From: Botryllus schlosseri
Lineage: Eukaryota
Length of the DNA: 64,000 nt
Direction: 5' to 3'
Assembly (NCBI GenBank): GCA_051294905.1
Contig: CM119382.1
Coordinates: 16,678,001 to 16,742,000, forward strand
A program made the translations under genes and the position numbers. Position 1 is the first letter of the stretch. The number at the start of each line of letters is the position of its first letter. The notes under the pieces are model-generated. The model had not been told where the DNA came from. It saw only the letters and a list, made by a program, of their open reading frames with translations, and did not search any database. Of the stretch, positions 3,801-38,543 are shown in pieces.

Positions 3801-6800
3801 CGTAGACGTAGATTTTCAACGTACAACAACATCATGGTATTGCGGGCATAAGGTCAGTTGTTTGACCACCACGTTCGCTCTGAAACCTAGATTGATTGAG
3901 TGCCTATGTATACAACACTTGCGATAAGTCGATTGCTGCAAAGAATTTTGACGCCACATGCCGGAAAAGAATTTAACGTGTTTACCGCCCGTCAAAGCTG
4001 GTTTTATTTTTCATCAACAGGATGAGAGATAAGGGCAGATTGGTATTTGCCAGAACATGCAACCTTCTTCTATTTTTAACGGTCGATTATGTTGGCAGTG
4101 GAAATAATAAGGGTCTCACGAAGTAGAACCATATGGTATGCGCCAAATTCACAGATATTTCTTTTTCTTTTTTTTTCTCGATTGGGTACGTTTCAATATA
4201 CCGTACCACGAAAATATGAGGTAAATTCTCGTTGATTTTACTAGGTCTAGTACGCGACTTCCAATACCAGATCTAGCTAAATTATTTCATCATCACTCCA
4301 TTAGCGACTATACGTTTTGGCCGAATGACCGCAACGTGAACTGCAATAGACAATTGTGGATGACTGGACATTCATCAAGCTCTAATTCGATGGCATTATT
4401 GCTAGAAACAATTCCGTTCCAAACAACGATCATTAATCACTGACAACTTGTTCGCGACATCGGCATGTAGACGAGAGCGCACGTTTCTTCTGGGCTTTTC
4501 CGGTGGCGCGGCATGATGGTGGCTCAAACCTGTAATTACGGATAAATGAAATTTGGCCTAATGATCTAAAGAATTCCCCATACTTCGGGATTTTGTGATC
4601 TGGGTAATAACAAGATAGCCTGTCGACAGCGCGACATGTTTGTGTTCTAGATTTTTACAACAGTTGTCCTTACAAACAGGTCAACATCAGGGATTTCTAG
4701 AACTCACTGGTCAACAAAATATCATTATACCTCGTGGTTTCTTATCAAGAAAAGCAGTCACCCATCGAAGTTAGTAGGTGCTGTTGTTATTTGTGGTATT
4801 CATGGTGTTTGTCGACGACTATGGTCATTTAAACCAGGCCAATTTTCTTCATTTTTATTCCACAGCTGCCGACTTGTAGCAACGCCCACATCTAGGCTTT
4901 TCATAAGACACCGCTTACACGGATAAAGGAGCCTAGATAAACCTATGCGGACCCGAACCCGCAACTCATTGGTGTTGGAGCTGTGAATTATACCACTACG
5001 CTATCCCGCCACTCAAGTTAGTAGGTGTGAAATGGGTGTGTCATAAAACCGTACACACCATACAGCATCTGAATAACTGATTGGTTGAACATAACTTGAA
5101 CACGGCTTTTAACAGCAAATTCATATTTATTGACTCGAAGAACTTTTCGCGTGCTTCTTATCAGGAGCAGACGCAATAATGAAAATTTATAAATAACATG
5201 AATGGAAATTCAACCATAGCAACAATGCAGCGTAGCAACAGTCAACTTAAAAAAAGTAGTAGCCTACGCGTACTACTCTACTATACTCTTGATAAGAGGC
5301 ACGCGAAAAGTTCTTCGAGTCAATAAATATGAATTTGCTGTTAAAAGCAGTGGCCATATAGTTAAATGGCGTAACAGCTCAGATGGTGCAGTGGTTGCCA
5401 TTGGAAGACAATGTTCTATAGTTCTATATAACCTTGAGATATCGTTGCAAAATTCATTCATTCATTCATTCCATACAAAATTCATCAATAATCCAAAATC
5501 TTCGTCGCGTAGCGAGCGTGGTTCTATAGCACTTTGGAGAGTGAGAGTCATTTGTATAGTAGACATGATTTAAAGCTTTCTGACCAGGATTAACTAAATA
5601 TCCTTGTTTTCGAGAGCTACAAGTTAATAAATTCTTTACCGCAATGAATGTAGTTAGCAATACACAAAATAGAACGTAACTAAATCGGGGAGTGTACGTT
5701 ACACTGGGCTCAAAACCGATAGGTATGAGCCCATACCTAACAGTTGTTATAAGAACCTTGATTTGATCCCGAAAATAGTGCAAACAATTATTAGATCGTT
5801 AATTAGTCGGATGGTCGAAATATTTCCAATAGTCAAGTCCAACCCCGAGAAAATCGACCTAACGTGGAACTCTACCCCGTCGTCTTTAGTGCAGGTCTTA
5901 AAATATGGAGGCGCCAAACCATGAAAATTTTCGAAAGGAAAACGGACAAAAATATCTTTGACCAGGACTACATCGACATGTAGCATTTTTACGGTATAGG
6001 CGATCATCATTATCAAAACATCCATTCCATTCCATTTATACACCACTCCGTGTTATAAATAGAGCCCGGCCGATTATCGGCTTGACGATAGTATTGACTC
6101 GATATCAGATCACACTTTATCGGTATCGGCCATTAGATGTGAAAAATATCGGCAATTTTTTGTGACGTCACAACATGGTGGTAGGAGTTAGAAAACTATA
6201 ATCCTTGACCGCTAGACTGGTAATATTTCTGTATTTCATACAGCTTACACTTTCAAGGTGCCCAGATGCAGCCTTTCTGGTTTATTTCATATTCGAGTAT
6301 GACAATGGCTGTAGAGCTGTTGGTGAAAATGCCTAGCAGCTCTGCAAATGCGTTTTTTGAGGTTGATTCCACCTTATTTGAATATCGGCTGAATATAGCG
6401 GTGTTATCGGTGAAAGTGGAAGATATCGGATTCATCGGTATCGGCCCAAAGACCCAATATCGGCCGGGCTCTAGTTATAACTGTTGAAACGACGAGAATT
6501 TCGCGGATTCCAACCATTCCAAATCTTATACGTCGACTACATCCAGCCGGTGTTGGGATGACTCGAGTCACCTTTTTCGTATGACTTGACTTGACTCGAG
6601 TCACTTTGCTAAAATGACTTGACTTGACTTGACTCGGCGCATCAAAAATGTGGATTGACTCGTGACTCGGAGCAAAATTCACGAGTCAATTTCAAGTCAT
6701 CAAGTAATCGGTGTCGATAAAAATCCCTGTATCTTGCATATGGTCGGACTGTTCGCGAAATCCTGGTGTGACCCGTGAGAGTGACCAATCTTTCAGTGAT

Positions 6801-22700: not shown

Positions 22701-22854
22701 ATGGACACGCGATACGGTCCTGTGAAATTGAAAGTTCCAGCGGGCTTTCCTGTTCTTCTTCAAAGATTCGCACGTGAGGTGATACGTGAACAGCCTGAGG
22801 ATATCGCGGAATTTGGAGCTACATTTTTTCAAACACTTGTCATTGAAAGAAAAG
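22701..22854 (+). CDS. SPA17-like: SPA17-like exon 1 (RIIa domain)
   Basis: ATG at 22701; donor GTATGG at 22855, phase 1. Confidence 0.9.
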
Positions 22855-25800
22855 GTATGGCCACCAAAAATGTAGATACGTTAATTTACTTATTTACATG
22901 AAACTCAAATTAGTTGCCGTGCAATCGATCGTTCAATTTGTTATCGTATTAAACTATGGATCGCAATTTGCCAGGAGAAATATGGAAATACGATTCGTAG
23001 AATCTATAAGTAGAATGCGTGCTGTTGCCTGATAACCTGCTAGATTCGTAGCCTGAGTTCAAAGTAAGTTGTAGCTAGGTATGTGTATGTATAGCCTACT
23101 TTAGTTGCAGACGTTGCAGTAGCAGATGCACGTTTCTGCCTTTGCGTTGGTCCTGGATGTGACAGCTCAACGACTACGACCTACGAGGAATGCAACGACA
23201 GTATTGCCTCAGATAGATATAACCTATTGGTGGAATGGATGGAATATACAGTAGGATTTGCATTGTGCCTTCTGTATCGCAATGTACATTGTGTGTGTCG
23301 TCATCGGATGAAAATATAATCTCACGATTATATTGATATTGATACACAATACGGTAATTCAATACCGGTAATACGGTAATTAAAATGTTGCTAAGAATAT
23401 ACAAGATGGTACTGTTATGGCATATGCCCACATTCTAATTAATGCTCTTGGATATTTGCGTGATTCGATGCTGGGTTCCCCTTCCCCATTCCTGCCAGAC
23501 ATTGCTCCATATTAGGGCGGGGCATGGACCGGAGCCGGTAAGGATATCTGGCCGGATTTTCTCATTTTTGACTGGAGCTGGTTCGGAGCCGGATCTGTAC
23601 TTTTTCTGATATGGCCGGATCGGAGCCGGACCAGTAATTTTTACTACGAATAGGACAGTCTTACCCTCTTCCACCCTCAAATCAATAGATAAAGTGAAAC
23701 GTTCATGGAAATAAACCACATACCAAGTTCAAGTTGGTATAATAAATTCAGCTAAGGGTTGGGCTTGATATTTGAGTTTTTAATTTTCTGTTTGCATTGT
23801 TCCTATCAATATTCAATACCATCCTGTGAGTAGATGATTACTTTTGGAGTTTTTCGGACCGGATAACGGTCATTTCATAGAATCCGGCCTAGGAGTCGGA
23901 CCGGAGTAGGACCAGAGAATTTATCGATCTGCTCCGCACTACTCCATATAAGCCTACTGTCTCAATCTAATCAATTGCGATTACCAATGCACCGAAATCT
24001 TATAGCCTGCTAAGACTGTCACTTTAACACTTGCATGTTTCATATGAGACTCCGTCATGAGAAAAGAATTTTTTGAAAAGTGTGAAGTCATACTTTTCAA
24101 AAAATTATTTAAAGAGCTTCTTGGAGGTACAGAACTTCACTACCGGTATACAATTGAATAGTATATGAATATACTACTCAAAAAATTATTTATATAATTG
24201 ACTTGGCAACTTTATCGGGGATGATTTGTCGCCCTTACCAGTTTTTCTTTTTAGCTAAGCCTACTATAAATGCTACCATGCTATGAGCAGGAGGCTGAGG
24301 GCCTATTCAAACTTTTACGGTAAAGAATGGTGAAATGACGACGATTCCGTGTTGGTATTTGAGTAGAAGTAAGGTATAGGCCTATATTGAAATCATTATC
24401 ATTACCAAAGAAATTTGATAATGATAATGATCTTGGACATACTGTGACAAAGTTAAAAAAAATTAGTATAGCAGCAGCGTGTTGACAAATCCAATTTATG
24501 ATCTATTGTAGATTATGATTTGATGTCAAGGTTGATTTTAACATCATTTACATGTTTCAAAATAAAGTAAATCAGTCTCTTGTCTCTGATGACCAAGCAC
24601 ACACTTTCAGATATGGTTCAATTGGTCGGCATTGATACTCGAGCAGAAATAAGGTTGTAGGCCTGCATTGGCTAATTCTCATTACCAAAGAAATTCGATG
24701 TATATGGTAATGAACGTTTAGCTATAGCCCATAATCTATTAATGATCGCAAAGTCATGATTAGGGCTGGGCACAATGATTCGAGTACTGAAATTAGATGC
24801 TTCTCACCACTGAAAGTAAATTTATGAACGAGCATTATAGTTTTGATACTAATTTCCACAGTTGAATCCTTGAAACCTTGATTGGAGGTATCGTAGCAAA
24901 CGAAACATATATTACAAAGCTACAAAGGTTACTGTCATGATTATCCCAATATCCCACACACAACATTGTCACCAAGTGGAATGAGATCGGTATGGTCGAA
25001 CAAATACCAAATTACCCTTTATGAGCTGGATAACAGGCGTTATATTCTTTGTTGTGGCATAAACGGTACACATTTGATCTTTCACTTATTACATTCTGTT
25101 ATGACATCATAATGAGTGATACTCGATTACTCGACTCGAAGCATATTACGTGATTCAGAATCGAATCACTCAGGTAGGACTATTCGATTTTGCCCAGCCC
25201 TAGTCATGATAAGAATAAACTAACTTGGTCTTTGATGCCTTCCAGTTACTGGCGATGATCCACTGGCAGGCGATCCATACGACAAGCCAGGCTTCCATAC
25301 ACCGCCAGTGAAGGCTCTTCGACCAATCAGCTCAAAAACAAGACAAGAGGAAATTAAGCGCGGTCAAGCTGCCACCAAGATCCAGGCTGGGTACAGAGGC
25401 TATAGGACCCGCAAAACGTCGACTCAAAATCGGTGAGTAGTCAAATTGAGTGTATTGGTGGGATGGTTTAAATCACTGTTACTACTTTATGTGAAAGCTC
25501 ACCAGTATAACTGTCTGAAATCGCCTTCAAACCAGAGATGCTCACTGTTTGGCTGAGTGCTATCTGCTTTTCGAATGTTGGAATACATTGCCATGATTTA
25601 TCACCCTGCTACGTAAAGTAATAAATAGGCCAACACTCCCTCTTCACCCTAATTAGACATTTTGCCACTTTACAGCGTGTTTGCTGTTTGGATGTATCGT
25701 GTACACTGGCCTTAATCTAGTTGATGTAGTTTCAATTTCATCCTTGATTATAACCTATTATTAGTGTTGCCGCACTCTGATGAAACGCTATCGCGATCAG

Positions 25801-28800
25801 AGTTGATAGAAATTGAAGTAAAAGTAACATCAAATTATTTACTCAAGTAGGCTTACAAGTAAAAGTATCTATAGGTATCCAAGGAATGTCAAAACTACGA
25901 ATGTAATCAGACAATGAACGTCTGAAAGCACTCAAGCACTCAAAGTAAGTAGCTTCAAAAATTAGTTTGGCTGAGGAATCATGCACTTTTATTAGTTGAT
26001 TGGAAGGGACTACTTCCAAAATCGCAGGGCGCATCTTTGACAAAAGGCACCATAGATAGGTGCAATTTCGAAAATAGATTCAGGTGTCGCGGTACAGGAT
26101 CTATTTTGTCCATTTGTCACGACAGTTTTGCTCTTGAAAGGGACAGAGATATATAACCAGTCCACTTTCCTAATGTGTGAAAAGGAAATGAGCTTTGTCT
26201 AAAAAAAACTGTCGAGTAGAAGTGGAAGGAATCTGTAAGTATAGCTTCTTGAGTGCGTAGCCTAAATAGCGTACTACATAAAAGTAGATGTCGGGCCAAC
26301 TTCATTACTGATCAGTGATCGCCTCTGATGGGGATCTGCCAGTCGATTAGTGGTGAACCTATGCTATAAATTGATGGTTGGATATTGGCGATGACCTGTA
26401 TTCTTATTCTTCTAGTCAAATTTTTGTTTGCCTCTGATGTCAAAATAGGCACTGTTGAAATCTGGAAATTGAGGTCACGCCAAAGTTTAGTGTCCTATTT
26501 GTCATTCAAAAACACCGGCAGTTCGTGGAGAAAGGAAATAGCTGAAATTTCCTTCAGTGTTGAAAAGAGAAAATATTTCAGTCAATGCTGAACACCGATA
26601 TTGCAATGTTTCGGGATTTGAAATTTTCAACCATCCATCACTATCAATCGACCTGCTAATCGTTTAAGGCTTGCTTTTCAATCTTTCATCGTTGCGTGAC
26701 TTTGAGCGATTTATTTCTTCAGAAAATGCGAGCAAAGCCGCCAACAAGAAAAGGCTGCTACTAAAATCCAAGCGCAGTACCGCGGTTATAGAACCAGAAA
26801 AAGCATCAGCCAGCCCGTGAAAAAAGATGTCACGGAAACAGATGATGAAGAGAGAAAACAACGGGAGAATGTAAAATATTACAATTTTATCGTCGAGATT
26901 TAGTCATATCAGTCCCGAAATTTCGCCAGCTCCCCAAGAAGTCAATCGAGCTTGTTGTGTTATAATCTGGGTATGCGCGAAATGGTGAATCTTCGCGTGA
27001 TAGACAATTCCTGAAATACATTTCCGAAACGCTGCCTGAGAATTTCAGCTATCATAAACGCACGAAGTGCCGTAAGGGGATATCAGACGGTCCGCTATGG
27101 CCGCGATAAAAAACTGAAAGAATTCCTTTTGTGGCCACAGTCGTTGCTGCAATTCAGTTGTTGCACAGTTCTATTGCCCCCATCCACTCAAGACACACGA
27201 TATATCATTATTTGTGGTGCAGAAGTTGAAAATTAGTCATCACAATATATTTCTTCACATTCTCGAAAGCTTTTCCATTGACCCTTGTCAGGAAGAATCG
27301 TGGATACGAAAGTAAATACAAATGTTAAATTTGAGCGTAGTAGTAATATATAAGTTATTGCGATGTCAAGATAGCAATCCAGCTTGGCATAGCAACAGTG
27401 AAATAAGATGAGACGAGTTATTTGATTGGTTAACATATGGTAGGCCTACATCGGATGGTGTTCGAAATTTTCAAATTATAAAGGAATAGCCAGTGTAAAC
27501 TTAGTTTATTGCGAATTTGATTAACCACATTTGCTGAAGAGTGAATAAATTCGGCAATATTAATATATGTTTGTTGCAATATTGCAGTTTTGGCCATTAG
27601 CCTATCTAATCACTGGAGATGCCTTCAGTGTAATCATTGAATTGATTAAATTAACCAATTTAACATGTAGTGAACGTTTTGGTTGTTGAATAAGTCTTAA
27701 AGGCAGCATGGCTGCTTTTTCAAACACAGTGCTTGGTTCAGTTTGACTGGGGCTGTTTGAGATTTTCAGTGCCGAATCCGGAATATATGTATTATTAACA
27801 GGTTGCTGTTGACGATAGTGCTCCGAAATCAACGTCTGATGATGCAAAGGAAGACGTAAGTTGCTTTTTGAAGTTATTAGAATCCAGTCAATTCATGTCA
27901 GGAACATCTGACCACCTGACGGTATTTACCTTCAAAGTGTTTATGTGTATTAACAGGTTGCAGTTGATGATAGTGCTCCGAAATCAACATCTGATGTTGC
28001 AACTGAAGATGTGAGTTACTTTTTGAAGTTATTAAATTCCAATCTATTCATATCGGGCACATCTGACCACTCGACGGTATTCACCTTCAACGTGTTTATG
28101 TGTATTAACAGGTTGCTGTTATAGAGCCTGCTCCGAAATTAACGCTGGATGATGCAACTGAAGACGTGAGTTACCTTTTGAAATTATTACCTTCCAATAT
28201 ATTTATGTCAGAAGCAAGCGACCACTCAACAGTTTATATCTTTAAGGTGTTTGTGTGTATTGACAGGTTGCCGTTAAGAAGACTGCTCCAAAATCAATGT
28301 CTGATGATTCAGCGGAAGATGTGAGTCACATTTTTATCTATTTATCACGGTCTAAACCAGTGGGTGCAACCTTTTTGACAAGCCCTGCCGATATAGAATA
28401 TCACAGTGAAACCAAGGGCCGCACATAGGAAGTTGATACTCTGATTTTGGCGGTTGATGGCGTCGTCCCAAAAGCATCCAGAAACATATGATGGATTTCA
28501 AATGGATTTTTGACTTCCCAGTGTTAATTTCAAGAGATATTCACTCTTGTATTGTGGAAGGCAATGAGTCCACACTGACTTTTGAATTGAATTTCACGTT
28601 TGAACTTTGGATACAGGTATTCGCCGTTACACGTCTACAGTATAGGTAAACTGGTATCAGGGTGGTATTGCTGTGAGATTTTGCCCGAATGCTGACAATA
28701 ATGATTAACCATGCTTAGCTTCTCGTTTGTTTTGAGCTAACCCTTTTCGGCTGTGGAGTTGTTTCCTATAATCGCAAGATTATGAATTTTTTTAATTGTA

Positions 28801-31800
28801 ACAAACTGCGTTTTGTGTTTTCGATACGGTGCTTGCTCATTGTACTGTTATTGTTGTTCTTTTGTTAGGGAGTTCAAATGGTATGAAACTGTTACGTTAT
28901 ATCACAATAATCAGCAATCGTGAAAATTATTCTACTACAGGAGCAGGATCAACTAAGTTTGCATCCTATTGAAGACCGTATTGTTGATGTTTTTGAATGG
29001 TGCTCTATATTTGTGATGTGACAGATAATACCAACTTCTGAAGGCCAATATTGAAATCTTTTAAGGGTCACATATTTGTTGTGAATAGTCTAGTAATGGT
29101 ACAGGAAATCCTTGTCTTCTCGGGGCAAGTAGGTGTGTCCAATGTCTTCTATGCCGCTATCTGATTCCAACTTGTCAATAGATATTCTTGAAACACCGTC
29201 CATTAGCTTGAAGAATCGATCTGGAAACTTGAAAATAGGATTTTTGATTCAAATACCTCTTGTGACCATTAGAAAATCATGCAGTTGGTAATGAACCATT
29301 TGTAACTAGTTGATATATCTTCTTGTAGTCAGACGGTATCGTGTCCCAAACCTATATGGTTGTAATAAAATTTTCTCTTTGTTGGGATCAATGTTGTTGC
29401 CGTGTTGCTGTGATTTTCAAGTGTTTAGAATTTTATTGAAATTTCAATTTATCATGAAACTTGATATGTCCATGATACCTTTCATGCCTGGTTCAGCCTT
29501 GTGCACCGTATCAATTTTTATTGACACCGACCATTCCATTCTTCAAGGAACAACCAAAAAAGACAGATACCTCAAAGGATGCGGCCGCTATAAAAATTCA
29601 AGCCAAATACCGTGGTTACAGATCTCGAAAACTAATGAGAGAAACTAATGTGGTAAGTTTCTGTCCGCATGAAGCCACTAATGAAGTACTTCTACTTTTT
29701 TGGATCACTCAAGTAGGTTTTGACTAGCTGCACTGCCTACTCAAACTAGTTGCACTAAATCTACTCGGGCCACGCTAAGACCGAACCTACTTTTTGACTT
29801 TATTTGCACAAAATCCGATAAAGCTGTATTAGGAAAAGCAGTATGCAAAATGTATTTATTGTTTTGTTGGTCATAGCTAGTGGGAGAAGTGGCATTATTT
29901 ATTTCTTGCTAGTTCTTCAAATCTCGGTTCCAAAGTGATGAGAGAGAGTCGAAAGCAATGGTGAAGGTTTTCACTGGTCATACAGATCCGAAGTCTATTC
30001 TTTAGTAAGCTTATTTTTGAAAATGCTGAACAGAAAGAATAAAAACACTGTACTTTGTTTTTGCAAATCAACCGTAATGGATTCAACACTGAAACACTCT
30101 GCATTCGAACTGTGTTCTGCTAGTTGAGTAGCACTGCACTATATAGACGGTTACTGAGCTATCCAACAACTAGATAGGCTATCTTAACATACGGTAATTG
30201 CTTTTGATTCAGATCCAATCTCAAGGTACCTCTGACGAAGAAACTGGTAAAGAATCACAGGCTGAGATTATCGCTGATCATGTGAGTGTTTTCGTGATAT
30301 CTTATGTCATGTCATAAGTGTTTATTCGGTCGAATTTGCATGCTAAGTTTGGTTTGTGATCGTGTACATTGTACAGTACCTTGATGCCGTGTTTATGATA
30401 TTGCCATCGTCTCAGTGGTTGAAGTGATCTGTTTTATTGAGATGTGAGAGCGAATCCTATTCCCAGCCAGGTTTTACTATGTAACCCGCAGACGCGGTAA
30501 ATAAAAAGTAGCCTACCGTCTGTTTGGAGTACTTAAGTAGGCTTTGCTACTTATTTGAGTGGATATGATTTTAGGCTAACTCCACTTTTACATCACAGTT
30601 TTCGAAGAAAAACTACTTACTTTCTTCCACTGTGGATTTTGTAAAGCAGTAGCTTTTGAATAGGTTAGCATTGCTGTTTGGTGAGTGAAATTGTCATGGC
30701 AATCGACCGAAGTAGCCCCTGTATCATGGAAATTGAATATATTTTCGAATGGTGTGCATATTTACATTGTCGTTAGTCATTTTGTGTTGGCTGCGATTAT
30801 TTGTCTTTCAATTTCGATAGTAGTTATCACTGATTGACAATTAAGAATGCGATTCCTCGGCCAAATCTAATTGTTGAAACTACATATTTGAGTGATTTTC
30901 AAACCTCTCGCTCTTTACCTTGAGTTGAATTAGTTTTAACATACATTGAGAATTGCTAATTGTAGTTGTAATTGGGTAGAAATCTAGGGTAGGCCTATTA
31001 CTGCTACTTCTACTTGTGTAGCAAGCTAACAACTGTGACCGTCTCTGTAATTGGTTCAAAGACAAATTTAGCCAATGTCGATCATTTCCAATCTTGAAAA
31101 TCTAGAGGCGTAAGCACATCGAGAAACCGCCTTGTTACCTAACTTCGTAAACGCACAAATGAATTTGATTGCTGGAGTGTTGAATGATGATCTTCTTGAA
31201 ATTTAGAAGCCGAGTGACGATATCGCTGATAAAGTAGCTGACGGTGAATTGGCGTCCGAGCAAGTCGCCGAGTCGCAAAATGCAACTTCCACCATCGACG
31301 TGAGTTAATCTGCCTAGCATCGAGAAACTTGTAGCCGTCATGAAGCCAGCTTCGATGACCGTCTCATTTTCTGTTTAGGATGACACAAAGCAAGAAGAGG
31401 TGGTCGAAGATAAGAATTTGGAAGCCAGTCAGGAATTTGAGCAAAAAGACGAGGTTAATTTCTTGTTTTTCTTAGACTTTTGTACTCGAAATACATTCCT
31501 TATTATTACAACTGGATGAACGTGTTACCGGCGTTACATTTACACACATTCGTATAATGCATTATGCATATTTACTCTACACGGAGATTTTTGAGCTGCT
31601 GCTAATCACGGATGGCCGATACCTATGTAACGCTCTTTTCATAACTTTCACAATTATTTCCTCCAATTTGGACAACACAACATGTATCTTTCCGAGTCAT
31701 GTGACTTAGATGGGATGATCATGATGCAATCCGAATGAACGTCATCCAAAAGATACCTGAGTCGCTTTTGTTGGTGCAAGATGGCGCACCTATCGCTTTT

Positions 31801-34800
31801 TTGCCAAATGGCGACACATATGACAGTATTTCTGTAATTGAGTGCCTTCCAAAATCTTTATGGTGACGGCCCAATTTACTATTTGGAAGGGTCTCCGGCT
31901 TACCTCTAAATTTGGGGAGCTGATTAGTAAAAAATAAAACCACACGACCACGTTAGCGACAAAAAAATAAAACCACAGGTTGATAACCACTGATGTAACT
32001 GAAATCTGTTGACAGAAATTGGAGGAATTACATGAAGATAAAGAAGATATGGAAGCCGCTGCTTTAAAGATCCAGGCGACTTTCAGGGGTCACCAGGCAA
32101 GAAAGCAATTGGAAGGCAAAAAGGAAGTAAGTAGCACTAATAAGCTTTTCAATGATGTATTTCGATTAGTTTAAAAGTAAATTCAGCCGGTGAGAGAGAG
32201 AAAGGCAATAGTGGGACAATTTAAAATGCAAACACAGTATTTGGTATCGGAAGGGAATAAACGGTGCGATCTTTTGAGTTCAACTAGTTTGATCACCCCC
32301 CCGTGATACATAACAATCATACTACGTTGGTGACTTTATTTGGTGTTAATGCGTTTCCGTCCATAAAACTTGTGCGAATTCAACTGTAAATTACATGACA
32401 TTACATGACAGTGGGTAATCGGACTTGAACTCGCAAAAGTAAAGGGGAACTAAACACTAAACAATATAAGTTAGTACCGGTAGTGCAAGAATAGAAAACT
32501 TACTAATACACGTGGAGAAAGGAGATTTTAGATTTGAGGGTTCCAAAATCACAAATTAAACATGTAGATGCACATGTGCTCCGTATTGTTTATTTTTCTA
32601 TATTGCATCGATCGAGCAGTTAGATTGTCCCAGGGGGGGGGGGGGAATTCAAGGTCACCTTCGCCTGTGTATATGATCCAATTTTGTAACTTTGGCTATT
32701 TGACAGCATCTGGATGTATCCCAGGACAAAGTTGACGATGTGTCCGATGCCAAGCCTGTAGAACCCTCGACTGAAGATAAGGAAAAGGTGAGTCTTGCAA
32801 TTTATTGGATCAAAGTAGAGAATAATACAGAGAGTACTTCAGATCAGTGTTTATTTATCCGTGAGGTGATTTGGTTGAAGTTTTATTCCAAAAACTCTAT
32901 GTATAACAAACCTCTCTGTTCACCCGGCACTGGTTGAGAATATACCCAGAGACCTCTTAGTGTAATGGTGTAACCATAGAGCTATGATGGCCGCGTAATA
33001 AAATACGCCATCTATAAGACAAGGCAAGATAGCGTAATGGTGAAGCGTCCGGCTTCTTGATCGGTTCGATCTCCGGCATGGTCAGACCATAGACCTGATT
33101 AGTAACACTGGTATCCATGACTTCCCTGCTTGGCGCTCATGCATTACTGGGATAGCATGGAGGCGTGGGCAAAGACTTAGGCTACAAGACTATATCTGCA
33201 CCTTCCTTGTCCAGTGGCATATGCACATCATGCACTCATGGTATGCATATGCACAGATCATGTGTATGTCCATCATGAGTCGATGTATGTGCCACAAAAA
33301 AACATCAACTGCAACTACCAAGGTCTAATTTCTTCTTTCCCTCAATCTTTTATGACCTGAAAATTTCAAATATATGTGTCACTGTACAACTAGGTATTGG
33401 CTTAGGGTCTGCGTACGAGTTATCTTGCTAACGTTTGCCCTTAATTTTTATAGTCCGAGAAGGAGCTGACCTCGCCTAGTGATAATGAACAATCGGAGGC
33501 CGCTGCTTTGAAGATTCAATCGACATACCGAGGTCACATGGTCAGGAAGCAATTGAAAGCAAACAATCAGGTGAGCGTAGGCAAAGTTTTGAAATAATTT
33601 ATCGCTGATGCAATTAACAAGGGAAGATCTATTTGTGTGGTCTTGTTCTCGGTACTAAATTCATTGCAGCATAGTTTATTTAACTCTGAGACTATTCTTG
33701 TGCTCCTTATCAAGAGCTGAAAGTACAGTAAACATAGAGGATGTCACACAGTGCATTGATTAAATTTTTGGTAACAGAACGAAAAAACTGAGAAAAAAGA
33801 AGAAAAAACTGAGCAGCCCGCCGTGGATTCGTCAGATGACAATCTCACTTCAGTAGGTCGCTTTTTCCTATTGATTAATGCATTAAAATAATAGTGCTTG
33901 ACATATCTTCTTGGCATCCGATAGAAATAAAGAGTATTAGAGTAGCAAGGCATTCAATTTTACCCACCATTGTTTTCTCGACTGCGATTGACCACTACGT
34001 ATATAATGCATCAACGAAATCTCCCTTTTGAACTACTTGATTATTTTTGAGACTTGTTTAATGGGTTGCATGGCAACAGTGTTGCCTGTCCGGATTACCA
34101 GTTATCAAAGCAAGTTCTGCATATCTTTCAGCCCGAAGACAAACCAGAGAATTAATTGGGCCTGTAACATTAATAAATTTTTATCTGATTAAATGAGACA
34201 CTGGTCTTCCATCTACTGTACACTGTAGACACTGTACATACGTTGATAGTTGTCAAATGACATGATCATTTCACAGATGTTGTGGACCATGAATGATGCT
34301 GGTAGGAAGTAATATGCAATTATGCATAAATCAACGAGACCGGGGTGCTGTTGGTCCATGTGCATTGTGAATGGGTTTGATGGGTCTCTTATCTAGTAGA
34401 ATTGATGGCATACAGAATGTCTTGCCAGAAGACAGATGCATATCCTAATCCTTGATAAATCAAACCATGCAGGCTTCTTATGTGATCATATACACAGCAC
34501 TCTTTTGAGTTTTGTGACTTTTTCATATGAACCAATTTATTCTAAAGGCACCAGTGGAATCTATGGACAAAGTGGATGATGTTTCCGTTGCCCAGACCGT
34601 GATTCAAGATGGAGAAAAGGTGATCATTGCGTTAGAATGGATTGAAATGTCCACAATATGATGATGATCTAAAAATTCCGGCATTGGAAATGATGCCCGC
34701 ATGTCTAAATTAGAGGTCGTTTGAACGTCTATATTAGAGTTTGTCTTTCACATTTTTGAGAATTATGACTTTCCAGAGTATTCATAGTCTTGGACACCTC

Positions 34801-37800
34801 TTTTTCACTACGGTATCGTTTGTCAACTAGAAATTTCAAATTCGTAAGAAATTGTATGAATATGGATTACGTAGAGTGCGCGCATCTCAGAAACCAGGGT
34901 TGTAATGACTCGAGTCATGACTCGACTCGAGTCACGTTTTTCAGATGACTCGACTTGACTCGAGTCATTTTCTCAAATTGCGGAAATGACTCGACTCGAC
35001 TCGAGTCGATTTGTGTGTTGACTCGACTTGGACTCGAGTCATTGCGCATGACTCGAACTAAGTCGTATGACTCGAGACTCAGACGGCCAAGACCGACGTT
35101 TCATTGTAATTTCGAGGAATAGTAAAGTAATCACACTATTGGGATTTCGTCTATTGGTACAGGTAGGCTACTTGAAAATGCGCCCAGAAACTTCTAAAAA
35201 TGACGAAAATTAGTATGCGAACCAATCGATATCACCAAACAGAGTGGATTTAACAAGCCTTTAACTGGAAACTGGGCAGTCAACACAATAACATTGACTC
35301 GACTCGAGTCATAATACCATGACTCGGACTCGACCCTCTGCTTGGTGACTTGGACTCGGACTTGACTCGGTGGTGAATTGAAAATGACTCGACTTGACTC
35401 GAGTCAAAACTATGAAACTGAGATTGACTTGTGACTCGGAGCATTGTGACTTGGTTACAACCCTGTCAGAAACATTCGCACAGCGACGGGATAATGTCCC
35501 TTCGTACATTGGTTGATTTTTTCGTGACAGGAAGAAAAAATTGAGGAGAAAGAAAAAGAATCCGAACAACCCAACATGGATTCGTCAGATGACAAACCCA
35601 CATCGGTACATTGCTTTTTATGTTATCGATATGCATTGGATAGTGCTGGGCATATCTTCTCGGGCATCACTGCAAAATAGCGAGTGTCAAAACACCGGGT
35701 GCCATGATAGTAAGGCATTCAAAATTTAACAAGATTTCAACTTCTATAAAAGGGTTACTTACTGGCGGACCGCGGTCCAAATGCGGGCATTTTCAATGTT
35801 TAATCTGGACCCTATCTCTCTCAGTCATTTACATAGTTTATTGACAAAACCAAAGTGCAGCTAGTCGGTGTTTTAAAATATGTATCTTATAAAGAATCGA
35901 TTTCCCATCTGTATGACCAGTAAAAACTTTCACCACTGACTTCGACTGACTCTCGCCACTTTAGAGATTGAGATTGAAAGAACTTGCAAGAAATAAAAAA
36001 TGTCAATCCTCCCACTAGCTGTGACTAACAGCATAATACATACATTTCGCTTATTGCTTTGCTAATACATCTTTATCGGATATTGTATGCAGATATACCA
36101 TATTACAATTGCATGACTGTAAATTATTTCATGAGAGTTATAGCGGACTGAAGCAAATTTTAAACTTTTTTAAGTGCACCTTAGCTAAACATAGTTGAGT
36201 AAGGTAGCCCAGTTCTATAGGAAATTTCATGGTGCATTCTTTGTCGTTTTCAAGATTATCACGTTCTGGAATATCCAGAGTCTTCGCCTGCAACTACCAA
36301 GGTTTAATTTCTTCTTTCCCGCGATCTTTTATTATCTGAAAATTTCAAATATATGTGTCACTGTACAATTAGGTATTGGCTTAGGGTCCGCGTACGACTT
36401 ATCTTGCTAACTTTTGCCCTTAATTTTCGTAGTCAGAGAAGGAGCTGACCTCACCTAGTGATAATGAACAATCGGAGGCTGCTGCTTTGAAGATTCAATC
36501 GACATACCGAGGTCACATGGTCAGGAAGCAATTGAAAGCAAACAATCAGGTGAGCGTAGGCAAAGTTTTGAAATAATTTACCGCTGATGCAATTAAAAAG
36601 GGAAGATCTATTTGTATGGTCTTGTTCTCGGTACTACGTTCATTGGAGCATAATTTGTTTAACTCTGAGACTATTCTTGTACTCCTTATCAATCGTTAAA
36701 AGTACAATAAACAGAGAGGATGTCACACAGTGCATTGATTAAATTTTTGGTAACAGGAAGAAAAAAGTGACAAAAAAGAAGAAAAACCAGAGCAGCCCGC
36801 CTTGGATTCGTCAGATAACAATCTCACTTCCGTATGTCACTTTTTCCTATTAATTAATGCATTAAAATAATAGTGCTTGACATATCTTCTTGGCATCCGA
36901 TAAAAATAAAGAGTAACAAAATAGCAAGGCATTCAACTTTACCCACCATTGTTTTCTCGATATATTTACCAGACACTTCTTCTGAACTTTTGAACAATGA
37001 AGAAGCTATTGAATTCTGAAATAGTGTCTTACGCACGACACAAGTGTTTGCGTACATTATTCCCTGTCTCCTGTGTGTCACTACGACTCGTGACTTAGCG
37101 GTAATTAATTGCAATACTGATATAATATGTTATTTAGCTGGAACCATGTTCGTTGAGATTCAGAATTGATCTTACCCAACTCTTTGAAGGAAATGTATGA
37201 AAACTGTTCATCTTATTACTTTGAATTCTACAGGAGGCGACCCAAGGCCAGGTGGAAGACGTTGAGACATTAACTGGGCACAAAGATGAGGTGAATATCT
37301 TAAAACAATGTGGAATATTAATAAATCTTTGTATGCATTATGACATCTGCTACTCAGAGGTGGTCAGTAACGAAATATTACTTTCTCAAAGAACTCAAGT
37401 CGTTATACATTTTGACTCGGCGATTGAATCAATACTAGCTAGCCCTGTATTTTACCTGACATATCGATCTCGCCTTCCGACACATGCCACCTTTTTTATC
37501 ACCTGTCCTTTGATATTATCTTCCTTTACTTTTCATTCAGTGTGCATGCCTCCTTTTTTATATCGCCTACGCCAGGTTGGTGTCTGATATCGAAGACTAC
37601 TCCAAGTCGTTTCAACACCTTCCTATCTTTCATTGTGTCGCAGTCTTGTGGTGTATTAAAATGGTGAAATAATTAGCAAGAAATTGAATTGGCTCAAAAA
37701 AGTCTGCGGCCCGTCGTTCTAATCTGCTCGTTCATACTACCAGCTTGAGTAATCAGACCTGTCGTATTCGATTTCTACCTAATGTCGTTTTGCTGAGCTT

Positions 37801-38543
37801 TGAAAATCACTACTTCTACTTGGAATCGAGTTGAATTTTTTGAGCTTGGGTATTAAAAGTGATTACTTTGACCACCTCTGAGCGGTGCTACTAAAAATAT
37901 GCCGTGTTGTCAGTGAATTAATTTAGCGCCATTGTTTCCATCCAGCAAATTTTTGATCTGTTCATTGGGACCATATCTATACTGATTATATCGAACGGAT
38001 GTGTGACTTTTTGTTATTGTTGAAATATTTCGCCCTCTCTCCCTGAAATATTTTTCTTATCGTACTACCAACACCACCAGCCAAAATAATGACCATACCT
38101 ACCCTCACTCTTACAAACGGTAGTTTTCTGTCTCGTCTGGAAGTAATTTAGACGCGTCTTCGAAATGAACAGTTGCATTTGTATTTGAACGGAACTTCAT
38201 GTCATTACATCAACCGCCGGTTTTGTAGGCATTCTTTGGCCACCTCTGAATATCCCACCTTCCGAATTTTCAACAGGCCGACGGAGATAAAGCAGCGAAC
38301 AAGGAAACCATCGAGGGTAATACCGGTAACGGTAACGAGTCTCAAAACGTAAGCAACCAAGTCCACGTTGTCGAAAAACCTCAAGATGAGAACCTCCCTG
38401 CTGCGGAAAATGTTCAAAAGTCGGACGAGGCAATCTCGGAATCGAAGAATGAAGTATCGGGCGATAAGGACAAGGAACGCGCAGCGGTCAAGATTCAGTC
38501 CAATTACAGAGGGTACAAAGCTAGAAAGCAGCTGAAGCAATAG
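22701..38543 (+). CDS. SPA17-like: Sp17/SPA17-like RIIa (dimerization/docking) domain protein with seven IQ calmodulin-binding motifs; 20-exon model, about 666 aa
   Basis: N-terminus MDTRYGPVKLKVPAGFPVLLQRFAREVIREQPEDIAEFGATFFQTLV fits the Sp17/CABYR/ropporin RIIa pattern. Twenty GT-AG exons join in frame (phases 1,2, then all 0) to 2001 nt ending TAG at 38541-38543. IQ motifs lie in exons 2,3,8,11,13,17,20. Confidence 0.85.
23513..23941. mobile_element. hAT-type MITE (CCGGA-rich), 429 bp
   Basis: Imperfect TIR TAGGGCGGGGCA / TAGTGCGGAGCA; perfect TSD CTCCATAT. Confidence 0.85.
24761..25202. mobile_element. hAT-type MITE, 442 bp
   Basis: 12-bp TIR TAGGGCTGGGCA; perfect TSD GTCATGAT; ends 43 nt before SPA17-like exon 2. 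Confidence 0.9.
25246..25432 (+). CDS. SPA17-like: SPA17-like exon 2 (IQ1: AATKIQAGYRGYRTRK)
   Basis: Acceptor ccttccag; donor GTGAGT; phase 1 to phase 2. Confidence 0.88.
26723..26870 (+). CDS. SPA17-like: SPA17-like exon 3 (IQ2: AATKIQAQYRGYRTRK)
   Basis: Acceptor tttcttcag; donor GTAAAA; phase 2 to phase 0. Confidence 0.88.
27802..27855 (+). CDS. SPA17-like: SPA17-like exon 4 (54-nt repeat exon VAVDDSAPKSTSDDAKED)
   Basis: ttaacag|...|GTAAGT; first of four units with a 155-bp period. Confidence 0.8.
27957..28010 (+). CDS. SPA17-like: SPA17-like exon 5 (54-nt repeat exon VAVDDSAPKSTSDVATED)
   Basis: ttaacag|...|GTGAGT. Confidence 0.8.
28112..28165 (+). CDS. SPA17-like: SPA17-like exon 6 (54-nt repeat exon VAVIEPAPKLTLDDATED)
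   Basis: ttaacag|...|GTGAGT. Confidence 0.8.
28267..28320 (+). CDS. SPA17-like: SPA17-like exon 7 (54-nt repeat exon VAVKKTAPKSMSDDSAED)
   Basis: ttgacag|...|GTGAGT. Confidence 0.8.
29548..29652 (+). CDS. SPA17-like: SPA17-like exon 8 (IQ3: AAIKIQAKYRGYRSRK)
   Basis: Acceptor ttcttcaag; donor GTAAGT. Confidence 0.85.
30213..30281 (+). CDS. SPA17-like: SPA17-like exon 9 (acidic linker IQSQGTSDEETGKESQAEIIADH)
   Basis: ttttgattcag|...|GTGAGT; 69 nt, phase 0-0. Confidence 0.75.
31379..31453 (+). CDS. SPA17-like: SPA17-like exon 10 (acidic linker DDTKQEEVVEDKNLEASQEFEQKDE)
   Basis: ttttctgtttag|...|GTTAAT; 75 nt. Confidence 0.75.
32016..32126 (+). CDS. SPA17-like: SPA17-like exon 11 (IQ4: AALKIQATFRGHQARK)
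   Basis: ctgttgacag|...|GTAAGT; 111 nt. Confidence 0.88.
32707..32787 (+). CDS. SPA17-like: SPA17-like exon 12 (HLDVSQDKVDDVSDAKPVEPSTEDKEK)
   Basis: tttgacag|...|GTGAGT. An in-frame alternative acceptor at 32724 is possible; 32707 is preferred because paralogous exon 15 also has 6 codons before DKVDDVS. Confidence 0.72.
33023..33310 (+). mobile_element. tRNA-derived SINE with a conserved central-domain-like segment
   Basis: A-box TAGCGTAATGG and B-box GGTTCGATCTC, then CTTCCCTGCTTGGCGCTCATGCA, which I recall from Meta/V-type SINE cores; absent from the paralogous duplicated block at about 36270-36290. Confidence 0.6.
33454..33570 (+). CDS. SPA17-like: SPA17-like exon 13 (IQ5: AALKIQSTYRGHMVRK)
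   Basis: tttttatag|...|GTGAGC; 117 nt. Confidence 0.88.
33778..33852 (+). CDS. SPA17-like: SPA17-like exon 14 (NEKTEKKEEKTEQPAVDSSDDNLTS)
   Basis: ggtaacag|...|GTAGGT; 75 nt. Confidence 0.8.
34065..34077. promoter_or_regulatory. Near-palindromic RFX X-box motif in SPA17-like intron 14
   Basis: GTTGCATGGCAAC versus the established consensus GTTGCCATGGCAAC. Confidence 0.5.
34548..34619 (+). CDS. SPA17-like: SPA17-like exon 15 (APVESMDKVDDVSVAQTVIQDGEK)
   Basis: tattctaaag|...|GTGATC; 72 nt; paralogous to exon 12. Confidence 0.72.
34895..35465. mobile_element. hAT-type MITE (GACTC-rich ends), 571 bp
   Basis: 11-bp TIR CAGGGTTGTAA; perfect TSD TCAGAAAC. Confidence 0.9.
35531..35605 (+). CDS. 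SPA17-like: SPA17-like exon 16 (EEKIEEKEKESEQPNMDSSDDKPTS)
   Basis: ttcgtgacag|...|GTACAT; 75 nt; paralogous to exons 14 and 18. Confidence 0.78.
36433..36549 (+). CDS. SPA17-like: SPA17-like exon 17 (IQ6, protein-identical to exon 13)
   Basis: ttttcgtag|...|GTGAGC; 117 nt. Confidence 0.88.
36757..36831 (+). CDS. SPA17-like: SPA17-like exon 18 (EEKSDKKEEKPEQPALDSSDNNLTS)
   Basis: ggtaacag|...|GTATGT; 75 nt. Confidence 0.8.
37234..37290 (+). CDS. SPA17-like: SPA17-like exon 19 (EATQGQVEDVETLTGHKDE)
   Basis: gaattctacag|...|GTGAAT; 57 nt. Confidence 0.75.
37355..37880. mobile_element. MITE-like element (CAGAGGTGGTCA TIR)
   Basis: TIR CAGAGGTGGTCA/TGACCACCTCTG; TSD not clean; related left end at 50399; carries an internal segment homologous to 51100-51300 and 17770-18070. 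Confidence 0.65.
38277..38543 (+). CDS. SPA17-like: SPA17-like exon 20, terminal (IQ7: AAVKIQSNYRGYKARK, stop)
   Basis: ttttcaacag acceptor; 89 codons including TAG; not in the ORF track because it has no start codon. Confidence 0.88.
   Translation, partial: ADGDKAANKETIEGNTGNGNESQNVSNQVHVVEKPQDENLPAAENVQKSDEAISESKNEVSGDKDKERAAVKIQSNYRGYKARKQLKQ

Follow-up and report, generated by a model that had tools for sequence, protein, structure and literature searches.

A sea-squirt gene for a relative of Sp17 encodes an RIIa domain and seven calmodulin-binding-type IQ motifs

Most discussion of Sp17 concerns a small mammalian protein that has a single IQ motif and is known as a sperm and cancer-testis antigen; in vertebrates, the SPA17 gene is a neighbour of NRGN. 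IQ motifs of the type found in neurogranin and GAP-43 bind apo-calmodulin. Mammalian Sp17/SPA17 (PDB entries 7my4, 8j07 and 9fqr), a protein of 147-151 amino acids, has an N-terminal RIIa domain that is followed by a short G-x-DP segment and an IQ motif of the AAxKIQxxFRGH type. A model of bovine sperm radial spoke 1 includes SPA17 (PMC11755891), and SPA17-ROPN1L heterodimers as well as the anchoring of RSP7-RSP11 on RSP3 have been described (PMC8339350). Chlamydomonas RSP7 (7jtk, 7ju4, 8glv) couples its docking domain with a Ca2+-related part as well, in this case EF-hands, and binds Ca2+ itself. Neurogranin and GAP-43 (neuromodulin) are neuronal proteins with a single IQ motif and, in mammals, no RIIa domain.

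The gene described here, from the sea squirt Botryllus schlosseri, shares the RIIa domain, the G-x-DP segment and the IQ type with mammalian Sp17, but its product comprises 674 amino acids and seven IQ motifs. It lies in a window of 64 kb, the whole stretch of DNA that was analysed, where an independent gene model yields one gene of 20 exons on the plus strand (22701-38543; Table 1) with a 2025-nt coding sequence and a product of pI 4.9. All 20 exons have AG/GT borders, internal stops are absent, and the TAG stop codon (38541-38543) finishes exactly at the end coordinate of the preliminary description, 38543. In the product the RIIa docking and dimerisation domain is followed by an acidic tail of 622 residues (D+E 22.5%, K+R 16%), which is probably disordered and bears the IQ motifs. 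The layout proposed earlier, one RIIa domain with about 600 residues of acidic linker and seven IQ motifs, has thus been borne out, with Pfam matches to the RIIa domain and to each IQ motif. The locus is a genuine sea-squirt gene for an Sp17 relative. As a side observation, the LEDRFYNN segment that usually follows the RIIa domain in Sp17-like proteins is absent from the product.

Table 1. Exons of the Sp17-like gene, with positions in the 64-kb window.
Feature	Position	Strand	Content	Evidence
Exon 1	22701..22854	+	start codon and RIIa; donor AAAAG/GTATGG, phase 1	Pfam PF02197
Exon 2	25246..25432	+	linker and IQ1; phase 1 to 2	Pfam IQ 26.5 bits
Exon 3	26723..26870	+	IQ2; phase 2 to 0	Pfam IQ 29.9 bits; aligns to second IQ of P0002 and P0151
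Exons 4-7	27802-27855, 27957-28010, 28112-28165, 28267-28320	+	four 54-nt (18-aa) mini-exons	phase 0-0
Exon 8	29548..29652	+	IQ3	Pfam IQ 27.3 bits; depth in X1, X12
Exon 9	31207..31299	+	acidic linker	donor joint seen in X5 contig; acceptor predicted only
Exon 10	31379..31453	+	acidic linker	GT..AG joints at both borders (X5 contig; donor also X12 reads)
Exon 11	32016..32126	+	IQ4	joints at both borders in X1, X5, X12, X16; Pfam IQ 29.6 bits
Exon 12	32707..32787	+	acidic linker, DKVDDVS type	joints at both borders in X1, X5, X12, X16
Exon 13	33454..33570	+	IQ5, first copy of duplicated IQ exon	acceptor joint X1, X12, X16; Pfam IQ 30.2 bits
Exon 14	33778..33852	+	EEK-rich, 25 aa, first of three copies	X1 loose end; inside 673-bp duplication
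Exon 15	34548..34619	+	acidic linker, DKVDDVS type, predicted	splice sites and open phase-0 frame; X1 contig 7 length
Exon 16	35531..35605	+	EEK-rich, second copy, predicted	splice sites; X1 contig 7 length
Exon 17	36433..36549	+	IQ6, paralogous to exon 13, identical 39-aa product	Pfam IQ 30.2 bits
Exon 18	36757..36831	+	EEK-rich, third copy, predicted	splice sites; within 673-bp duplication
Exon 19	37234..37290	+	acidic linker, predicted	splice sites and open phase-0 frame only
Exon 20	38277..38543	+	acidic stretch, IQ7, stop TAG	Pfam IQ 32.6 bits; aligns to C-terminal IQ of P0002 and P0151

The product of exon 1 matches the Pfam profile PF02197 at residues 15-49 of the exon (E 1.2e-9, 38.1 bits, cut-off 22.4). 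When the exon was compared with the PDB using phmmer, the best matches were SPA17 and Sp17 chains (7my4, 3.1e-9; 9fqr, 5.6e-7; 8j07, 8.8e-7), in agreement with the Sp17-like identity assigned at the outset, and the RIIa domain of Chlamydomonas RSP7 proved nearly as similar (1e-7); RSP7 and the window product have the pattern GFP-LL--F-RE--R-QP--I-EFGA in common. Matches to PKA RII-alpha (1.3e-5 or weaker) and to ROPN1L (0.009) were weaker. By this measure, PKA RII, ropporin and the other RIIa families are all more remote from the domain than Sp17 is. Ropporin-1-like protein chains are present in the same entries as Sp17 (9fqr, 8j07). The closest RIIa fragment, P0001, is 84% identical. In a tree of RIIa sequences over 52 columns, the forks relevant to SPA17 orthology or to an origin of the two paralogues within tunicates are without support, and no supported set holds the window sequence. 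A model of the RIIa homodimer reached an ipSAE of 0.34 compared with 0.02 for the best control, with at least 97% of the contacts shared between runs and a partner pLDDT of at least 69; 21 of 30 solved one-chain pairs attain the ipSAE mark, and none of 23 single chains does. Since RIIa dimers have already been solved, the model may owe this score to memorised structures.

A search of all six frames of the window for the IQ regular expression gave seven matches in the gene, all on the plus strand (25380-38525), and a single further match, at 5778, outside it. All seven motifs read IQ-x-x-[YF]-R-G-[YH]-x-x-R-K and are of the complete type IQxxxRGxxxR, i.e. the neurogranin/GAP-43 sequence type (AAxKIQxxFRGHxxRK). 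The translations of the seven IQ exons match Pfam PF00612 with 26-33 bits (cut-off 20.3), and together with the PF02197 match they uphold both the domain assignment and the count of seven. RIIa and IQ were the sole families that Pfam detected in the translations of exons 1-3, 8, 11, 13, 17 and 20 and in full-length P0151 and P0002; there was no EF-hand among them. Thus, like RSP7, the window product couples a docking domain with a Ca2+-related part, but where RSP7 has EF-hands it has IQ motifs, which would require calmodulin.

The preliminary description viewed the gene as a small Sp17 that had been specially expanded in this animal, a framing that the comparison with other animals does not support. 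RIIa plus multi-IQ proteins of 290-880 amino acids are annotated in sea squirts, molluscs, cnidarians, hemichordates, flatworms and annelids, and the many-IQ state is therefore not special to the window gene. Styela clava LOC120344658 (P0002), an NCBI model of 347 amino acids that aligns to window exons 1, 2, 3 and 20, and P0151, a 600-residue open reading frame on a 2106-nt RNA contig, each hold the RIIa domain and five IQ motifs in one product; Ciona savignyi H2YJY1 (292 amino acids) likewise has five IQ motifs, compared with seven here. Other relatives include the Mytilus edulis 'Sperm surface protein Sp17' (843-852 amino acids) and homologues in Crassostrea, Haliotis, Rhopilema, Nematostella, Saccoglossus and Macrostomum. 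All of these proteins have the same order as the window product, PF02197 followed by several PF00612 matches in acidic linkers, although the number and spacing of the IQ motifs vary, and the non-tunicate proteins repeat a unit 'EEVDIDLxDPEVxxAAxKIQ' that the window gene lacks. The architecture is therefore not a new kind of system: dozens of species, other sea squirts among them, already have it in their annotations, mostly under wrong names (triadin-like, ASPM-like, DNA ligase 1-like), and all entries are automatic annotations. It is the small mammalian Sp17 with its single IQ motif that seems to be the exceptional case. In the literature searched, we found no experiment, localisation or description of the window protein or its multi-IQ relatives. 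The window gene's own product was not among the matches listed in homologue searches with P0002 and P0151, for which the length filter applied and the ceiling of 8000 candidates may account.

The same genome holds a second Sp17-like gene (L002; genome G000, contig C11, approximately 25779195-25776499, minus strand), which makes the window gene a member of a pair of paralogues and not simply 'the' Sp17. The RIIa exons of the two genes are 50% identical and share the start M-x-x-RYG-x-VKL and a phase-1 intron directly after the domain. In contrast to the seven motifs of the window gene, only one IQ motif was found within the 19 kb scanned downstream in C11, preceded by the DDPEV signature that is typical of Sp17-like repeats in other animals. 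When compared with other metazoan Sp17-like proteins, the C11 RIIa domain is identical at 28-30 of 51 positions and that of the window gene at 23-27.

To the exons themselves, several lines of evidence apply. Exons 1-3 and exon 20 are backed by alignment to P0002 and to the transcript-derived P0151; the exon 1 product is 67-75% identical to the N-termini of both, and that of exon 2 is 56% identical to residues 53-114 of P0002. RNA contigs and raw reads from four runs (X1, X5, X12, X16) were placed, at low depth, on the 6 kb from 27750 to 33749; joints 1>2>3>4 and 17>18>19>20 lie outside this stretch. Within it, transcription and splicing of the central exons are evident: GT..AG joints occur at five predicted borders (27855>27957, 31299>31379, 31453>32016, 32126>32707 and 32787>33454), exons 10-13 are joined in order, and read depth is confined to predicted exons and one intronic repeat. 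This repeat is highly transcribed, and its copy in the window gave no match in tRNA and Rfam searches. For the mini-exons, the joint 27855>27957 is contained in an X5 contig, and X12 reads lie on exons 5-7, four of them spanning 28146. Exon 8 is covered at 29577 and 29606 (X1, X12); because of the low read depth no joint is listed for it, and joints 5>6>7>8>9 were not seen in the reads on this stretch. A loose end behind 33570 (X1) corresponds to the first 30 nt of exon 14 (28 of 30 letters). A further phase-0 candidate exon of 69 nt with good splice sites (30213-30281) was left out, as its depth is zero in all four runs.

The tail of the protein grew by tandem duplication of symmetric phase-0 exons, and two duplicated units can be discerned. 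The smaller one is a 155-bp repeat, each unit comprising an exon and an intron, that is present in 3.5 tandem copies and provides the four 18-residue mini-exons, one in each unit. The larger one is a module of about 3 kb with an IQ exon and an EEK-rich exon; a 673-bp duplication of 93% identity covers exons 14 and 18, and the exon 16 region is a 74% nucleotide copy of the exon 14 region. Some of the array arose by recent tandem exon duplication: exons 13 and 17 differ at 3 of 117 positions, all synonymous, whereas the flanking intron differs at 35 of 481 (7.3%), as would be expected if both copies were under selection. We also considered that the identical IQ5 and IQ6 peptides might be an assembly duplicate, and rejected this because the 673-bp copies are only 93% identical and carry the 35 intron differences.

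Taken together, we consider it likely that the locus is one 20-exon gene of the Sp17/SPA17 branch of RIIa ('R2D2') proteins, one of two paralogues, whose 674-residue product would, judging by homology, hold several calmodulins at the radial spoke. The RIIa domain would form a four-helix-bundle dimer, either with itself or with a ropporin-like partner. Such a dimer would grip an amphipathic helix of the AKAP type; the most likely candidate is the helix of radial spoke protein 3, in the stalk of the axonemal spoke. Mammalian Sp17 occupies this position in axonemes whose structures are solved, and in Chlamydomonas RSP7 has the same role. Each IQ motif may hold one calmodulin or calmodulin-like light chain, and the acidic tail would then act as a flexible tether that keeps several calmodulins at one fixed place in the cilium or sperm flagellum.

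Alternatively, the gene could be the animal's Sp17 orthologue, expanded specifically in this lineage to a scaffold with seven IQ motifs, with regulated skipping of cassette exons setting how much calmodulin it can bind. Exons 4-19 are indeed all phase 0-0, as had been noted from the start, and each has a length divisible by three, so that the frame is kept if any is skipped. This reading would also fit the recent duplication within the array, the variation in IQ number among relatives (five versus seven), the up to 10 isoforms annotated for mollusc homologues and the uneven depth per exon. The mini-exons and exon 8 lie several-fold below exon 11, and exon 9 has zero depth in the X12 raw reads, which could reflect partial inclusion, 3' bias or mapping loss. 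However, none of the four runs has a listed exon-skipping joint on the 27750-33749 stretch at its low depth, and exons 10-13 are joined in order; multi-IQ forms occur across invertebrates and hence are not lineage-specific; and the C11 gene, with its single IQ motif, has an RIIa domain slightly closer to that of other animals. We regard this scenario as unlikely. Regulated skipping of phase-0 exons in the window gene is possible, yet the uniform phase of these exons is best explained as a side effect of their duplication.

It is also conceivable, albeit quite unlikely, that the protein acts outside the axoneme as a cytoplasmic or membrane-proximal calmodulin store like neurogranin, GAP-43 and PCP4, the RIIa domain serving only for dimerisation or for other AKAPs (fibrous-sheath-like, non-ciliary). 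The IQ motifs are of the neurogranin/GAP-43 type, fish models named 'neurogranin b' fuse an Sp17-type RIIa domain to a C-terminus of the neurogranin type, and according to reviews somatic tissues contain Sp17 mRNA (PMC11276731). A pattern search of the 64-kb window revealed no RFX X-box-like site, which would fit a non-ciliary role, although with 1.7 sites expected by chance this is a weak and uninformative test. Against a store of this kind, the nearest characterised RIIa relatives, Sp17 and RSP7, are built into the radial spokes of solved axonemes as structural proteins.

An improbable reading is that the 3' half is over-predicted, with exons 15-19 including IQ6 representing decaying, unspliced duplicates, and the protein being shorter with fewer IQ motifs. 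These exons are located outside the RNA-covered stretch; exons 15, 16, 18 and 19 are based on splice-site prediction and have weaker donors (GTGATC, GTACAT, GTATGT and GTGAAT). Decay, however, is at odds with the absence of non-synonymous changes between IQ5 and IQ6 next to three synonymous ones and an intron divergence of 7.3%. In RNA, an X1 contig contains one IQ-type exon followed by another. In X1 contig 7 two IQ-type exon pieces are 221-222 nt apart, in line with 75+72+75 nt for exons 14, 15 and 16. Moreover, some of the reads carry at 33501 the T by which IQ6 is distinguished, although this could be an allele rather than IQ6.

It is very improbable that the locus comprises two genes, one short with the RIIa domain and another downstream with the IQ repeats. 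Read-through past the exon 2 donor meets a TGA at 25434 with an AATAAA at 25620, making a short 114-residue isoform conceivable, and joints 1>2>3>4 lie outside the RNA-covered stretch. However, in the relatives P0002 and P0151, the latter from an RNA contig, a single product contains the RIIa domain together with every IQ motif. Moreover, exons 2 and 3 begin or end within codons (phases 1>2 and 2>0) and are sensible only if joined, and the downstream part has no start codon or other domain that would open a separate gene.

Returning to the reading of a multi-calmodulin protein at the radial spoke, one may speculate further that the many-IQ form is the ancestral animal Sp17 and the mammalian single-IQ form a reduced one. 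After a duplication in sea squirts, the window copy would then have become a fast-evolving multi-calmodulin spoke tether, its IQ number shifting between species by exon duplication (five to seven) and perhaps within the animal by skipping or by read-through at exon 2, which would yield the 114-residue product with a shape like that of mammalian Sp17. We put this forward tentatively and consider it doubtful as a whole. If it were true, evolution could adjust the Ca2+ control of the flagellar waveform through how many calmodulins each spoke carries, which would be of interest for ascidian sperm chemotaxis.

On a small scale, the locus illustrates cleanly how a repeat protein grows when symmetric exons are duplicated in tandem along with their introns. 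Judging from the window gene and its database relatives, the usual form of Sp17-type proteins outside vertebrates is long, acidic and many-IQ, so that a spoke could carry far more calmodulin, and in more variable amounts, than mammalian Sp17 implies.

The gene lies in contig C12 (window 16678001-16742000) of the 495.5-Mb Botryllus assembly, in animal DNA with a G+C content of about 40%. By reading splice sites directly and listing every open AG..GT phase-0 exon, we obtained a model of 20 exons with a CDS of 2025 nt and a predicted product of 674 aa (pI 4.9). The reading frame opens with an RIIa domain (Pfam PF02197, E 1.2e-9), and Asp and Glu make up 22.5% of the tail beyond it. A six-frame scan of the 64 kb returned seven IQ-regex matches within the gene, all on the plus strand, and a single additional match outside it. 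All seven IQ exons exceed the Pfam IQ gathering score (26-33 bits vs 20.3), the motifs starting at residues 97, 129, 252, 345, 411, 524, and 659. The phase is 1 at the end of exon 1, 2 at the end of exon 2, and 0 at the end of exon 3; exons 4-19 are all phase 0-0. Since these phases and the gene end agree with the preliminary description, its exon model is essentially correct; its observation of one RIIa domain and seven IQ motifs is borne out, its interpretation only partly.

Coordinates of features in and around the Sp17-like gene and its paralogue
Feature	Position	Strand	Remark
Start codon ATG	22701	+	
IQ-regex matches in gene	25380-38525	+	seven
IQ-regex match outside gene	5778		
Stop TGA beyond exon 2 donor	25434-25436		
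AATAAA	25620-25625		
RNA joint	27855>27957		X5
RNA joint	31299>31379		X5
RNA joint	31453>32016		X5, X12
RNA joint	32126>32707		X1, X5, X12, X16
RNA joint	32787>33454		X1, X12, X16
Rejected candidate exon	30213-30281		
Transcribed intronic repeat	32950-33349		between exons 12 and 13
673-bp segment	33309-33981		
673-bp segment, second copy	36288-36960		
673-bp segment, partial third copy	35504-35668		
216-bp inverted pair	29808-30023; 35871-36086		two introns
Stop codon TAG	38541-38543	+	
Second Sp17-like gene (contig C11)	about 25775500-25779195	-	L002, L005, L006
IQ motif of second gene	25776531-25776499	-	
Ser/Thr/Ala-rich open frame (C11)	starts near 25775973		

A search with exon 1 against 1.84 billion representatives, followed by two further searches, yielded two close relatives: P0002 (LOC120344658, 347 aa) from Styela clava, the source of the closest named homologue, and P0151, an ORF of 600 aa from an assembled RNA contig of 2106 nt. 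Exons 1, 2, 3, and 20 can be aligned to P0002, and exon 1 is 75% identical to P0151. Because both relatives unite RIIa and five IQ motifs in one product, and because codons are split at exons 1/2 and 2/3, the division into an RIIa gene and an IQ gene that the preliminary description had considered is very unlikely. Read-through of the exon 2 donor meets an immediate stop, with a polyadenylation-type AATAAA beyond it; therefore, one can conceive of a short 114-aa isoform that resembles mammalian Sp17 in shape, with RIIa and a single IQ.

Sampled words of 25200-35199 were present at 5-6% in seven public runs, about the amount expected from exons alone. RNA contigs from two sets (X1, X5) and raw reads from two RNA-seq runs (X12, X16), aligned over 27750-33749, gave GT..AG joints that coincide exactly with predicted exon borders, and RNA depth was confined to predicted-exon bins plus one repeat. 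An X1 contig extending past 33570 matches the start of exon 14 (33778) in 28 of 30 letters. This same contig, 362 nt long, joins 38 nt of an IQ-exon end to 103 nt of an IQ-exon start across 221-222 nt, which by length, the letters not being read directly, corresponds to exons 14, 15, and 16 (75+72+75). No exon-skipping joints were listed in these four data sets over this region, where few reads fall and 54-nt exons may escape the aligner. Depth per exon climbs from the mini-exons toward exon 13, a trend in which 3' bias, mapping loss, and partial inclusion cannot be separated. One candidate exon, open in phase 0 between good AG and GT splice sites and encoding 23 aa of acidic character, had zero RNA depth in all four data sets and was dropped from the model; it could be dormant, rarely used, or due to chance. 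Many exon positions in the RNA reads and contigs depart from the window sequence (28146, 29577, 29606, 31409, 31423, 32028-32036, 32116, 32770, and 32775), often in every read of a run, which indicates high polymorphism among the sequenced individuals.

The exon array has grown by duplication at two scales. Exons 4-7 are four 54-nt exons, one in each 155-bp unit of a tandem array that repeats exon and intron together, and a 673-bp segment recurs at 93% identity, with a partial third copy. The IQ5 and IQ6 exons (13 and 17) encode identical 39-aa peptides. Their 3 differences in 117 sites are all synonymous, whereas the intron part carries 35 differences in 481; this argues that selection retains both copies and counters an assembly artefact as the source of the duplicate. 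Such exon duplication both requires and leaves symmetric phase-0 exons. Two different introns of the gene hold an inverted pair of 216-bp segments (80% identical), probably copies of a dispersed repeat. In each of the four data sets, the transcribed intronic repeat exceeds the gene's exons in RNA depth by a factor of hundreds to thousands. Its reads extend into tRNA-like letters (GGTCGTGGGTTCGATCCCCGGCC) absent from the window copy, and many start with a template-switch oligo. The window copy had no match by ARAGORN or Rfam and probably represents a piece of an abundant element, either SINE-like or small-RNA-derived.

A second Sp17-like gene is present in the same assembly (G000) on contig C11. 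Its RIIa exon starts MSVRYGSVKL and reads MSVRYGSVKLQLPTGFKSLLEHLTREILREQPANIPEFAAAYF, and as in the window gene a phase-1 intron lies directly behind the domain. It has one IQ (DDPEVAKAATLIQASFRGFQVRK), the sole one in a downstream scan of 19 kb; before this motif stands the DDPEV signature found in repeats of other animals. A Ser/Thr/Ala-rich long open frame nearby may belong to it. In a 52-column RIIa tree without resolution at the deeper forks, the window gene clusters with P0001 (the closest RIIa fragment), P0151, and Styela, and the C11 gene with three other fragments. The RIIa of the C11 gene is slightly closer to Sp17-like proteins of other animals. The assembly thus holds two paralogues, and the window gene is not simply "the" Sp17; either of the two, or neither, may be the strict orthologue of vertebrate SPA17.

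Fish gene models of 500-619 aa (P0082 cluster, Amia; P0134, Chaenocephalus), annotated 'SP17 protein' and 'neurogranin b', combine an Sp17-type RIIa N-terminus with a neurogranin-type C-terminal IQ (DIPLDDPEANxAAAKIQAGFRGHMTRKKMK). In human, SPA17 adjoins NRGN. This hints at a common origin, or at read-through in the models.

Among solved structures, the RIIa exon best matches SPA17 (7my4, 3e-9), in support of the Sp17-like identity proposed earlier, followed by Chlamydomonas RSP7 (1e-7) and Sp17 chains in 9fqr and 8j07; PKA RII and ropporin-like chains give weaker matches. SPA17 is a metazoan docking-domain protein able to heterodimerise with ROPN1L, a pair likened to RSP7-RSP11, which RSP3 anchors in the radial spoke (PMC8339350), and PMC11755891 cites a model of bovine sperm radial spoke 1 that includes SPA17. 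A homodimer model of the RIIa exon narrowly passed a mark that 21 of 30 solved pairs attain and none of 23 single chains does (ipSAE 0.34 vs best control 0.02; contact agreement at least 97%, pLDDT at least 69), but the pass may reflect the model's memory because RIIa dimers are already solved. On the basis of these matches, reports, and model, we infer that the RIIa domains would pair and dock on an AKAP-type helix, most likely in the stalk of the spoke, and that the acidic, flexible tail may hold up to seven calmodulins.

Judged by annotated sequences, RIIa with many IQ motifs is a common layout. It is found in Ciona savignyi (H2YJY1, 292 aa, 5 IQ), in cnidarians (Rhopilema, 468 aa, 8 IQ; Nematostella), in molluscs (Haliotis, Crassostrea, and Mytilus), where lengths reach 880 aa and as many as 10 isoforms are annotated, in hemichordates, and in a flatworm, an annelid, and a horseshoe crab; the name 'Sperm surface protein Sp17' is carried by two entries from Mytilus edulis. 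This distribution speaks against the view of a small Sp17 expanded here; it is the small single-IQ mammalian protein that looks like the unusual form. The window gene joins, as a new member, a known kind that is widely annotated and little studied.
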